A stretch of 64,000 nt of DNA from Heptranchias perlo (taxonomy: Eukaryota): positions 47,864,001 to 47,928,000 of the forward strand of contig NC_090335.1 in the NCBI RefSeq assembly GCF_035084215.1, read 5' to 3'. Shown in pieces: positions 6,330 to 48,716 of the stretch; positions within the stretch are counted from its first letter, which is position 1; each line of letters opens with the position of its first letter. Below the pieces are notes generated by a model. The model did no database searches. It was given only the letters and a program-made list of their open reading frames with translations, and was not told the DNA's origin. Position numbers and translations under genes: made by a program.

Positions 6330-7415
6330 CGGGGAGGACAGGCTTGAATTTGGCTGCAGTGCTACCCACAGTCAAGTATCTGTCAATATTCACAGTGAGG
6401 GTTGACATGAATAACGGTCATTTGCTCGAGGCACTGGAGGCTGCCAGCAGGCATGGAACTGTCCTCCAGCATGGTGTTAACACACCTTCAGGAGAAGAGA
6501 GAGGAGAAAATTGGTCAGAGGAAGAAAAGTGTATTCCTCACCAACTTAAAGCCAATTGCTTGAAGGCAGAATCTGATATTAGATTGAAGTAATATTTACA
6601 TTAGGGAGAAACCTGTGCGTCACTCCCCAAGTTTGGGTGGGTGGAATTTGACATCTACTAATTTTTTAAAAAGCCTGCATCAAAATTTGTATACAACAGG
6701 GTTGAATTTCCGTGGGGATTCTCCCAATCATCCGCTGTACCTTTGGCGGAAGATCCATGGGAACCCCAGAGAAACAGTGTAAACTCCAACAGAAATTCAG
6801 CCAGTGTTCTTACTGTAATCTTCACCAATTTGTCCATCATGCAATAGGGCACCCTTCCTCCTCTTAACAAAAATTACAGCTACCTCAATCTAATTGCCAG
6901 TGAGCTCATATCCATAGCACAAAGTTAACCAAAATGCAGCAATAATTAGCAAGAAATTGTAAGTCTACCTTTAATAGCAGCACTTCATACACGTTTATTA
7001 ATTTATCAACTGTTGTAATAAAATAGTCTAAATCCTCATAAATAAACCAGTCTTAACTAGAAGTCAGCTAGCATTTTTTTAAAGATCAGTCCCGTGTACT
7101 TGTTAAAAATCATAATCCTATCTCCTCGATGGGTTAATGGGTGTGGCACCAAGCTGAACAGACCAGAAAGTCCCAGGTTTCTGGCCTGTGCGGTTAGGTG
7201 ACCTCAGCCGGGACTCAATGTAGAGCACTACAGCTAGCCTAATGTCCCTGTGATATGGAGGAAAAATTCAACCAGCATTCCCATTCCTGATTGTTGTGCA
7301 GTGACTGCTAGAAAGAAGAAGCATGTGGACCTCGGGTAAGGACAGAATCTGGCTCTACTGAAACATCCCCTCATGGTTAAATAGTGCATCGACACTCACT
7401 GTCTAGACTGACATA

Positions 7416-7600
7416 ATGTGGAGATGCCGGTGATGGACTGGGGTTGACAATTGTAAACAATTTTACAACACCAAGTTATAGTCCAACAATTTTTATTTGA
7501 AATCTACAAGCTTTCGGAGGCTTCCTCCTTCGTCAGGTAAATGTTCAGGAGCTCCTGAACATTTACCTGACGAAGGAGGAAGCCTCCGAAAGCTTGTAGA
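7416..7600. mobile_element. Mini Penelope-like insertion: 3' end on the - strand plus an inverted copy forming a 98-bp perfect palindrome (7503-7600)
   Basis: Same terminus as the large PLEs. 12-bp duplication TAGACTGACATA at 7404-7415 and 7597-7608. Palindrome centre CAGGAG|CTCCTG. Inserted in a SINE S1 copy. Confidence 0.92.
7561..7600 (+). ncRNA. Minimal type I hammerhead ribozyme (mirror copy on - strand at 7503-7542)
   Basis: TTTAC-CTGACGA-A-GGAGG(AAG)CCTCC-GAAAG-CTT-GTAGA. Confidence 0.8.
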
Positions 7601-7822
7601 CTGACATATGAAGAATGCCCTATTGGGCAAGGTCTCAGATGATGATTGGTGTTGATGGAATCATACTCCAAAAAGAGTCAGTGCCATCAGGGGAGAAGAG
7701 AAAATTGGGGGAAAGAAGGAGGGAAGCAGGATTCTTATTTTAACTGTTTTGCATGTGTGGATTGTTTTTGAGAAATACCCTATCTTCTAACTATATACAT
7801 ATATCTAAATTCATTTTTGTAG

Positions 7823-8200
7823 GCATGTGTGCTGCTCAAAGACATGTCCAGGTACAGGAAGGCCCCCTGATCAGAGCAGAAGGATACCACATAACCATTT
7901 GGTGTAACGTGTCCGGATACTCCAGTTCCATGCAGCAGAACTTTGAGTGGTCAATCTATCTGCCTTCTGCACCTGAAAGACAAATCCAGATAGTCAGCAC
8001 TAATGATCCAGACTACCCCTATGCTGTGTATGGAAGCAGAGTACGGAATAAGGAGGTCTACGTTGAGAGAATTGATGGAGACTCGGCGCTCTTGCACATT
8101 ACCAACCTACAACTGGGAGATACAGGGGAATATGAATGTCACACTCCCAACACAGAATCAACCTACTGGGGATCCTACAATGCCAAGGGGAATCTGACAG
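7823..8200 (+). CDS. IGSF3: EWI-family Ig gene (IGSF3-like), exon for Ig-V domain 1
   Basis: tttttgtag|GC...ACAG|gtacgt, 378 bp, phase 1/1. QRHVQVQEGPLIRAEGYHITIWCNVSGY...GEYECHTPNT..GSYNAK closely matches IGSF3/CD101 domain 1. Paralogue assignment is uncertain. Confidence 0.93.
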
Positions 8201-45625: not shown

Positions 45626-46538
45626 CTGGCTTGACTGCCAAATGCCACAGAATACTAACCGCAGCTCCAATGTTAACGAATTTTGGAAAGAGGGCCTGAA
45701 GCAGGTGTTACTTGCATTTGCCTTACTTCTGTTTTAGGTGTGGACCCTGGATGCCTAAACAGGGGCCTTTACCAATATGGAGGGCAGAGCACTATGGGTA
45801 CAAAATGTGCCCGCGCACACCGCCCGCCATATTGGCCACTTAAAGTGTCCGTTTTACACCTGTAAAACATGCGCGACGCCAACGAATTACTAGGCCGATG
45901 GGCCGAATGGCATAATTCTGTGCCGTAACCTTCTGTGGTTCAGATTGGTGATTGGCTGAAAGGGTTTCTTCGTTTAGTCACCATGTGATACGACTCACTC
46001 ACTCTTCAATAACTGAAGAAAATCAGTGCGTCAAAGCAGCTACTATTAGCAGAAACAGAATAGTGAACTCAATTTAAAGAATAGTTCCGAGAGATGTGTG
46101 ATAGATGCAGCCTGCCACTTTTAACTATGTCTATGTTTTTGACATGAGGTGATGCATCAGCAGACTTGTGACTGACTCATGACTGACAGTGTTGACCGCT
46201 CTACCAGTATAAAAGGCAAGCAACCTGCTTCCAGGTTTCTGGCAGTGGGGCTCTAAAAGTGCCTACTATGAGGTGAGCAAAGAGTTTTTCTCATCCTGTT
46301 TCCATGGAGAAACCCCAGCCTTTGTTCTGCACCTTGACACAGTGGTATGACTGGGATTTGGGAACTTACTGCATATATGAGGAATTACTGGCATGAATGC
46401 ACATCCTACTCCACTCCATGGCACAGCATGTTTTAGCACCATGTTCCCTAGGTTTTATTTTTAAAAGTTTATTGCAAGAATGCACATTAATAAGCATTTC
46501 ATGGCTCTCTGCATTTTTCCTCAGTGTTTTAAGATTAA

Positions 46539-46641
46539 TTGTAAACAATTTTACAACACCAAGTTATAGTCCAACGATTTTATTTTTAATCCCACAAGCT
46601 TTCGGGGGCTTTCCCCTTCCTCAGGCGGTGTGGAAGTATTA
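46539..46641 (-). mobile_element. Solo tail-less PLE terminal fragment with a hammerhead (46592-46628)
   Basis: 11-bp duplication TTTAAGATTAA at 46528-46538 and 46642-46652. Minus strand CCGC-CTGAGGA-A-GGGG(AAAGC)CCCC-GAAAG-CTT-GTGG. Confidence 0.85.
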
Positions 46642-48716
46642 TTTAAGATTAAATAATACTTTCTGCTGGTACTATAAATGAAAAAGAGGATATATTGAAA
46701 GCTGAAGTTGATCTTCAGTAAGGTTCATCCAGCACTTCTCACTCTAATGTTAAGGCTTTTTTGTTTTAACAGTAGATTGCTTTTCAGAAATAACATTGAA
46801 ATAAAACACAAAATCAGCAAAATGCATTTTGACTGTGTGGTAAAGTCTTAATGTTATGCACCATGTATCAAAATGCACATTAATAATTAAAAAGCCGACA
46901 CCCGACCTTCAGTGTGACATTTTTATGATTACAATTGACAGTCTAAAATTATGCAATTTTTGGAAGTTGATTAAGAACATGACAAGAGCTTTTGTAAAAA
47001 ATATGTTGCTAACAGATTATACGCTCACTTAAATTGTGCAGTGTACATCCTTAAGCTGCATATACAGTGTATTGAATAACGTTTTGTCCTCACCAGAATA
47101 AATGTTTTGCCTAAAGGAAATGTGAGGTCAAAGGGTTGTTAAAGTTCTAGAGGCCTTCGTGCTGTTCGATTCATTTCTGTGAAAGCCATTTGTTTGGATG
47201 TATTGTCTTCCTGAAAGCATTAAGCACTCATAGCAGAACCCATTCCCATGGTGTCTCAGTGTTGTGAAGGTGTCCATGACAACTTCTCACCTCAAATTTG
47301 TGTTGGCTATTTTATCAACACTGTTTGAATACACAATGTAATCGTGTAGAACCGAGGTACAATTTACTCAACAAACTCCAAAATATTGGATTTGTCTAAG
47401 TGTTTACTGATAAGTTCATAAAATATCAATAGAAATTGGCAAGCATTAAGCAGAATGATTAATTGTGTAAAGTGGGGACATTTTGATGTATGATAGAATA
47501 ATCATAAATAAGACATTACAATATGTTTCGTTTTCCCATTTTAATTTATTATTTTTAAAGTGGTTGTCTTTGCTCGGATCAAAGGCCTGTTCATTGTGGC
47601 AACCTTTGTCCTGCATGATTCTTACAGTATTTACAAGTATAGCATTGAAGGACTTCTGTACTATGATTCACATTATGCCGCACCTTCTAATATTCTTTTA
47701 TATACAATACCAGGATCTCTGCTATATCGCACTATTTTTATGACTTATTCATTAATAGAAAAGTCACTCTCTATTGTACTCCTCATAATGTGCTTTTACA
47801 TTGGACCTTGCTCAGCTTGGATCTTGCATGAGTGCCAGGTCCCTACGTTTATATTATCCCAACAGCAAAATTGTAGATCCGCTTTTTTGAGTTTAGAATA
47901 AGGGAGCTGGTTTTAGTAGTACAAACGGGGTGAAGAGGGGATAACAGGCACATGAGTGCCACTCTCCCACAATCCTACCCAAATACCCTTATGTAAAGGC
48001 ACCTTCACTGTTATGTAGTACGGCTCCAATAAACATTTCACAATAGTCAAGTATGTTGATAGCATTTAAAAAAAACTTGGCTCTGAATTTCCTTGGGCAG
48101 AAACCCGTTTACGCGTGTAAACAGGATTTACGCTTTATCAGTTATTTTTTCCAAATTCTCCAGTGTTCACCTTGAACTGGCTTTTAGGAGGAGTGTGAGA
48201 GTGATGTGGGTTGACTTGCTCATTAACAGTCTCCTCTCTTCCTCTGAGTAAGGGCCTCGCCTCTACTTGTTGTGACCCTCCTGATAACGAGGTCTGAAGC
48301 CACATCCGAGTAATTCATGATGCATCATGTTAGTGCAGCAGGGTGATGCACCACTTGTACACCTCTATCATGATGCAGCATGCTGTGTCATCTCTATCCC
48401 AGTGATGAATTTTGCTCCAGGCATTGCTAAGTTGTTCTAATTTATTAGGATCTGGTGAGGAAAGTAATAATTACATTTTGTTTAATGATAATGAATTGAG
48501 ATCTGTATAGCATATATTATAGTGAGCGAAGACATTTTTACAACTCATAGATCTGCAGTGGCATTGCTCATGGCCTGTTAAGCCCTGACAACAATTTATT
48601 TTCTCCTTTTTTCTCTCTCTCTTTTGGCTCAGCAGTTTTGTCTTTCTCAGAAGTTTGTGATTCAAGCCCCACACTTTAATGCAGTACTCAGGGAATGCTG
48701 CATTGTCAGAGATGCA

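Follow-up and report, generated by a model that had tools for sequence, protein, structure and literature searches.

How does a retroelement come to lie in a chromosome as two copies joined head to head, with its 3′ tail at only one of the two outer ends? Penelope-like elements (PLEs) raise this question wherever they occur in such a form: their insertions are 5′-truncated, form partial tandems, often have an inverted 5′-truncated neighbour copy, and bear a tail of 30–40 bp that often stands at one end only (Craig 2021), and inverted copies with a one-end tail are likewise described by Arkhipova 2013. Neither the route by which PLEs integrate nor the reason for their inverted and tandem structures is regarded as defined in the literature (Craig 2021; Frangieh 2024). 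We analyzed a stretch of 64,000 nucleotides (nt) from the shark Heptranchias perlo (contig NC_090335.1, positions 47,864,001 to 47,928,000; hereafter the window) that holds five insertions of one PLE family, four of which are head-to-head doubles. The best reading of these doubles, to which we attach about even confidence, is that two complementary DNAs (cDNAs) were primed on both nicked target strands, at two start sites that are already known, and were then joined head-to-head; we infer this from two large and two small doubles.

Five insertions of one Penelope-like family

Nine arms in five insertions were recovered by an inverted-repeat search together with blastn and tblastn searches of the whole window, for which the fullest arm served as query. 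These comprised double A, to which the fullest arm belongs, double B, which is the other large one, two short doubles near 7.4 and 27 kb, and a solo copy (Table 1). An earlier reading made from the letters alone (the sequence-only reading) had recognized the same insertions, four of the five as inverted doubles, and the searches returned its coordinates; neither blastn nor tblastn with the fullest arm as query detected further copies of the family in the window. Exact duplications of the target site (TSDs), 8–12 bp long, were present around three of the four doubles and around the solo, that of the 27-kb double measuring 8–9 nt, or 6–9 nt if the letters CAC are counted to the tail. Because a single exact TSD (12, 11, and 8–9 nt) encloses both arms, as had been claimed for three doubles, each TSD-enclosed double is one insertion event. 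All nine arms were 5′-truncated, such that the full 5′ end of the element is not in the window, and no direct (tandem) pseudo-long-terminal-repeat (pseudo-LTR) adjoined any of the window's copies in the blastn and tblastn results.

The open reading frame (ORF) of the fullest arm, located at 15404–17815 on the minus strand of double A, matched the reverse transcriptase (RT) domain PF00078 with an E-value of 3e-10, above the cut-off, and a second match to this domain (5.9e-9) was likewise above it; the domain lies within a single ORF. The C-terminal 230 residues of the same ORF matched the GIY-YIG domain PF01541 (E 9.4e-4) over profile positions 3–38, with a score of 19.9 bits that is just under the Pfam cut-off of 22.6 bits. 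Visual inspection of the translation additionally showed the motif Y-L-I ... C-x3-C ... Y-I-G-E-T, whose two cysteines stand between GIY and YIG; endonuclease-bearing PLEs have a C-terminal GIY-YIG domain with two cysteines at this place (CCHH; Craig 2021). Protein relatives numbered 4283 at E <= 0.001. The nearest were uncharacterised Heptranchias perlo proteins (93–94% identity), followed by proteins of Scyliorhinus torazame (85%) and Mustelus asterias (80%), while remoter PLE-type relatives with 35–50% identity came from turtle, tick, lancelet, and others, many of them with a precomputed match to PF01541. Based on the RT and GIY-YIG matches and the PLE-type relatives, the family is an endonuclease-bearing PLE of shark.

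Other copies were surveyed by mapping Logan contigs (no reads) onto double A. One same-organism DNA run contributed 74,343 matching contigs, and a run guessed to be RNA contributed 6,701, which is no proof of transcription. Contigs of two other organisms also matched (35 and 5 in number), with 4–7 differing letters per ~1100 nt in matches of up to 1.1 kb, and from these very few differences the family appears to be common to several species nearly unchanged. A metagenome scan with a conserved 21-nt motif from the 3′ region returned three loci, all of which were chance matches of 25–28 nt without an element around them. The insertion of double A is young, since there are no substitutions between its arms. 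Overall, the insertions are ordinary, young copies of one very high-copy PLE family, and the window reveals no new kind of element.

Table 1. Positions of the PLE arms, their TSDs, and associated features in the window (position 1 is its first letter).
Feature	Position	Strand	Details
TSD left, 7.4-kb double	7404-7414	.	11 nt, same as 7597-7607
Tailed arm, 7.4-kb double	7415-7551	-	tailed 3′ end at 7415; blastn q2615-2758, 90%; alignment
Short arm, 7.4-kb double	7552-7596	+	joins TSD with <=4 nt overlap (TAGA); blastn, alignment
TSD right, 7.4-kb double	7597-7607	.	same letters as left copy
TSD left, double A	15014-15025	.	12 nt, same as 19401-19412
Tailed arm, double A	15026-17783	-	tail 15026-15065; hammerhead ~15114-15155; predicted hairpin 15037-15100; RT/GIY-YIG ORF open to stop at 15404; 5′-truncated within N-terminal coding region
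Unpaired apex, double A, N-terminal coding sequence	17784-17983	+	5′ extension of tail-less arm
Tail-less arm, double A	17984-19400	+	ends ...TTTAC at 19400; with apex, arm is 17784-19400
TSD right, double A	19401-19412	.	12 nt
TSD left, 27-kb double	27141-27149	.	matches 27403-27411
Tail-less arm, 27-kb double	27150-27260	-	ends ...TTACA at 27150
Tailed arm, 27-kb double	27261-27402/05	+	last 3 nt (CAC) may be TSD
Tail-less arm, double B	29193-31797	-	ends ...TTTACAATTG at 29193; open 749-aa ORF 29520-31769
Tailed arm, double B	31796-34497	+	tail 34464-34497; hammerhead ~34370-34410; predicted hairpin 34423-34486; ORF split in three pieces
TSD left, solo	46529-46538	.	10 nt, same as 46643-46652
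Solo, 5′-truncated, tail-less	46539-46642	-	ends ...TTTACAA(TT)
TSD right, solo	46643-46652	.	10 nt

Two kinds of 3′ end

The tail is a conserved AC-rich stretch of 34–40 nt (76% A+C over the 34 letters counted) and was present in four of the nine arms. In the arm alignment, exactly one arm was tailed in each of the four doubles, in keeping with what had been noticed from the letters; if arms were independent, chance would produce this pattern with a probability of at most 0.5^4 = 0.06. Four of the five tail-less ends, namely those of A, B, the 27-kb double, and the solo, fell within ~6 nt of one another in the alignment (final letters in Table 1), and the clustering that the sequence-only reading had reported for three doubles and the solo was thereby recovered. 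No letters intervene between the TSD and the tail-less end in the solo, the 27-kb double, or A, and these ends are therefore original junctions that do not stem from later loss of a tail. The fifth tail-less end, in the 7.4-kb double, stops earlier still, as had also been noted, at ~92 nt before the end of the tail.

A hammerhead ribozyme is present near the 3′ end of the element. All nine arms had a minimal form of it, in which the CTGANGA and GAAA boxes, one additional base ahead of helix II, the closing G-C pair, and a palindromic AGCT that stands in place of helix III were invariant. Across the nine rows, which derive from five insertions, helices I and II were paired in 95.8% of cells and four of 11 pairs had a compensatory change (slid controls, 24–55%). 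A minimal hammerhead in the PLE terminal repeat is known from Cervera and de la Pena 2014. There was no Rfam hammerhead at the gathering score in the whole window, and none at E <= 10 in 34150–34520, which is expected because the minimal hammerhead lacks helix III. As a separate observation, the short arm of the 7.4-kb double (window 7590–7600) ends 1–5 nt after the predicted self-cleavage site, which lies after AGCTT. On one reading of this single case, in which the overlap with the target is at most 4 nt, the cDNA of the short arm may have begun at the 3′ end of ribozyme-cut RNA.

Downstream of the hammerhead, RNAalifold and single folds predicted a hairpin of ~64 nt in both large doubles (z -1.5 to -2.9; Table 1). 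In the predicted structure the tail-less site is located at the apical mini-stem, that is, at the tip, and the tail corresponds to the AC-rich 3′ strand plus ~12 nt. Measured from the predicted ribozyme cut, the tail-less site is ~55–59 nt and the tail end ~93–99 nt downstream. The divergent 27-kb subfamily has other letters at the tip and keeps the apical stem, with its tail-less end at the 3′ edge of that stem.

The published counterpart of this arrangement is that of PAc (Poseidon of Anolis carolinensis), where an AC-rich stem-loop contains two neighbouring internal sites at which RT begins, the tail being the stretch between them (Frangieh 2024). The genomic ends of PAc match both start sites, and its purified protein, which is predicted to be a dimer, cleaves and extends both target strands in vitro, with no bias toward the top or bottom strand seen in the use of the start sites (Frangieh 2024).

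The arms of each double and their joining

The arms of A were compared by exact segment comparison, as global alignment misplaced the large gap; the first ~130 columns of the MAFFT alignment of arms were misaligned. They share 1424 nt (122 + 461 + 841) without a single substitution, and the two differences that were flagged both lie at the edges of a 21-nt deletion. Specifically, two stretches are missing from the tail-less arm, one of 1280 nt (junction 18105) and one of 21 nt close to 18566 that lies between 5-nt CAAAC direct repeats, and the tailed arm lacks 200 nt of 5′ coding sequence and holds 1280, 21, and 40 nt that are absent from its partner. Since each arm holds unique sequence, neither can have been copied directly from the other, unless insertion was followed by several deletions. 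An objection to simple snap-back had been raised in the sequence-only reading, and it stands for A, given this reciprocal unique sequence; the short doubles are fitted equally well by fold-back of a cDNA.

The unpaired apex of A, 200 nt in length, belongs to the tail-less arm. It is open on the plus strand, in frame with the ORF, and its translation aligned to residues 44–145 of an 881-amino-acid PLE protein (P0004; 45% identity, E 1e-23). Moreover, another organism has a linear 764-nt contig in which the apex leads directly into the body. To the 5′ side of 17784, other sequence was present in eight same-organism contigs and in one contig of the run guessed to be RNA, and by-eye reading indicated that this alternative sequence continues the reading frame. 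The apex of B, comprising 25–28 nt at 31773–31797, belongs to the tail-less (left) arm and overlaps the tailed arm by the letters TA. The earlier assignment of the apex to the tail-less arm in A and B and the TA overlap at 31796–97 were both sustained, whereas the microhomology CTC proposed at 17781–83 was not: in other copies, the sequence that naturally precedes 17784 ends in CTA (consensus agreement 0.86) rather than CTC, and thus no overlap is shown at the A junction.

Between the arms of B, 60 of the 2570 aligned positions differed (97.7% identity). When compared with A, the differences, roughly 55–60 in number, were private to a single arm and divided about evenly between the two arms, and because each arm matches A about equally often the pattern is that of private decay in two sister copies. 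We also considered whether the arms of B are a mosaic of two subfamilies and rejected this, as they agree at 26 of the 28 comparable family-variable sites (from 29 left-arm sites, with 77 more rows outside the count) and their differences are evenly spread. In the tail-less arm of B, 114 nt are missing near the 5′ end, and the arm extends 25–28 nt further 5′ than its partner. Taken together, both arms of each double come from one source.

In the dual-priming reading that we favour, the protein of the element would cut both target strands 8–12 bp apart, and each exposed 3′-OH would prime its own cDNA on element RNA. A start at the 3′ base of the conserved hairpin would yield the tailed arm, and a start at the hairpin tip, 34–40 nt upstream, would yield the tail-less arm. 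Both cDNAs would extend toward the 5′ end of the RNA, halting at different places and sometimes skipping stretches, after which they would be joined head-to-head with an overlap of 0–2 nt and each would be completed on the other. Given that the arms of each double share one source, they were most likely templated by a single RNA molecule or by one tandem transcript. Dual priming explains the presence of one end of each kind, the fixed tail-less site (in the solo as well), and the unique sequence in each arm, and it fits the published two-strand extension. A narrower version, in which both 3′-OH ends prime on one RNA, each two-ended event gives one tailed and one tail-less cDNA, the tail-less cDNA runs ahead and supplies the apex, and the trailing one copies the RNA fully, strikes us as unlikely to hold in all its parts.

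The main alternative, possible though rather doubtful, has a single target-primed cDNA start from the tail site and fold back or switch template at the 5′-truncation point, so that a perfect palindrome results. The copied strand would then be linked to the remaining target end, either close to the hairpin tip or through microhomology, and the spacers and gaps of A and B would be later palindrome deletions. The two short doubles, being perfect palindromes without a spacer (centres AGCT and CAGCTG), fit such a fold-back better than dual priming, and so does the short arm of the 7.4-kb double, which joins the target with at most 4 nt of overlap away from both start sites. Sequence identity between the arms of A is what fold-back would produce, and self-priming, possibly on an antisense template, has been inferred from palindromes at inverted junctions (Arkhipova 2013). 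However, fold-back would have to be followed by three or more separate deletions in A (of 200, 1280, and 21 nt), with no substitutions in 1424 nt, and in both A and B it requires a central deletion in the tailed arm and larger internal ones in the tail-less arm. It also leaves the ~6-nt clustering of tail-less ends unexplained, as the same place ends the TSD-flanked solo and matches the published RT start site. The antisense variant, self-priming on a transcript from a bidirectional terminal-repeat promoter, was proposed for rotifer PLEs and explains why repeats are head-to-head rather than tail-to-tail (Arkhipova 2013). For the shark family we consider it improbable: no feature of the window favours an antisense template, the model predicts neither one tailed and one tail-less end nor unique sequence in each arm, and the PAc in vitro system runs on sense RNA (Frangieh 2024).

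It is very improbable that a double arose in two events, with a later copy landing head-on at the 5′ end of an earlier one, or that its palindrome is false and was created in assembly, even though the PLE enzyme accepts its own sequence as a target in vitro (Frangieh 2024) and PLE structures trouble assemblies (Craig 2021). No contig spanning a whole double was found among the pieces listed (15 of 485 joints and 16 of 1015 loose ends), as an artefact would have it. Both possibilities are nonetheless disfavoured because a single exact TSD encloses the whole, of 11–12 nt around two doubles and of 8–9 nt around a third; moreover, the arms of a double share variants. Ten of the 15 joints listed (of 485) link a left to a right arm elsewhere, three near-symmetrically (<=9 nt) and seven off by 74–851 nt, as would be expected from other head-to-head copies; the sides of these joints are only 20–39 nt long, so that they argue weakly against an artefact.

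Several points weigh against dual priming itself. The sample consists of four doubles, of which two have an informative apex, and finding the apex in the tail-less arm in two of two has a chance of 0.25. The perfect palindromes at 7.4 kb (centre at 7551|7552) and 27 kb are spacer-less, and dual priming would need both cDNAs to have stopped at the same nucleotide in each. No TSD was found for double B, where the best shared word near the ends is a 6-mer located away from them. The sequence-only reading had placed deletions in the tail-less arm only, which is borne out by the 1280- and 21-nt gaps of A and the 114-nt gap of B and contradicted by the tailed arm of B, which lacks 17 nt of a T-rich tract of the 3′ untranslated region that its partner keeps. 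Long palindromes are prone to central and internal deletions, which could create asymmetries after insertion. Finally, a strand-fixed assignment of the two start sites is without in vitro support, given the lack of strand bias in Frangieh 2024.

Among the 5′ ends of the four large arms, three (A tailed and both of B) fell within ~40 nt of a common place in the N-terminal coding region (17759–17783, 31773–31820). The two 5′ ends of B are not independent, and the clustering therefore amounts to one coincidence of ~0.03; the shared place may mark a hot spot for stopping or turning around. Apart from the PLE copies, the window contains a second, unrelated inverted pair at 38805–43118, with arms of 2068 nt that are 93% complementary and 178 nt apart, and related copies at 20492–21606 and 36704–37537. 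One ORF of this family weakly matched the Myb/SANT-like domain PF13873 (E 5.6e-4), short of the cut-off, and our guess is that the family is a DNA transposon. A LINE-type element with a 682-aa open ORF (RT domain PF00078, E 3e-34) is located between PLE copies at 23706–25754.

Comparison with known systems

The doubles of the window are the published PLE class signature and offer useful clues to how doubles form. The sequence-only reading had proposed a candidate two-ended integration system, but this is not a new system, as two start sites, a one-sided tail, and two-strand extension are already published (Craig 2021; Arkhipova 2013; Frangieh 2024). Nor are the near-full-ORF doubles as unusual as had been thought, long inverted PLE arms being described by Craig 2021 and Arkhipova 2013. 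The shark family shares with canonical Penelope/Poseidon PLEs the minimal hammerhead, frequent 5′ truncation, an inverted 5′-truncated copy, one TSD around the unit, and a tail of 30–40 bp. It differs from them in that there is no tandem pseudo-LTR in the window, where every arm is 5′-truncated, in that arms reach 2.7 kb and nearly the whole ORF, and in its extreme abundance.

With PAc the shark family has in common a tail bracketed by two RT start sites, an AC-rich stem-loop, and a hammerhead tens of nt upstream; both target strands are cut and extended by the PAc protein in vitro, and the evidence for the shark family is genomic. In contrast to the absence of strand bias in vitro, the shark genomic copies have one end of each kind per event. 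The main text of Frangieh 2024 does not tie two-strand extension to inverted doubles, the word inverted occurring there solely for a blocking nucleotide, and we found no statement of a dual-priming model for PLE inverted repeats in the literature, with older subscription papers and supplements beyond reach.

What is new here is the reciprocal unique sequence in A, the placement of the tail-less site at the tip of a predicted hairpin of which the tail is the 3′ half, and the single source of both arms of each double, and these are the three constraints that the window supplies. As the family is abundant and includes young doubles with zero substitutions, its copies could test whether the start sites and the two-strand extension seen in vitro create inverted doubles. 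If dual priming on one RNA were true, the one-end tail would be a direct read-out of a two-polymerase integration complex, and the inverted repeats of PLEs in general would be explained as well.

The remaining comparison is with twin priming of LINE-1, reportedly described by Ostertag and Kazazian in 2001. There too, the second target 3′-OH is said to prime on the element RNA and not on the first cDNA, the joins reportedly have short overlaps, and one TSD surrounds the product. A twin-priming product of the LINE-1 type was considered for the shark doubles and rejected, as their arms overlap by 45 to ~2570 nt: in LINE-1, adjoining parts of the RNA are said to be copied, which leads to an inversion, whereas the shark arms copy the same part, which leads to a mirror-image duplication. 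The second start of LINE-1 is reportedly a chance match with the target, while that of the shark PLE is fixed and defined by structure. The process may thus work like twin priming, although its product differs.

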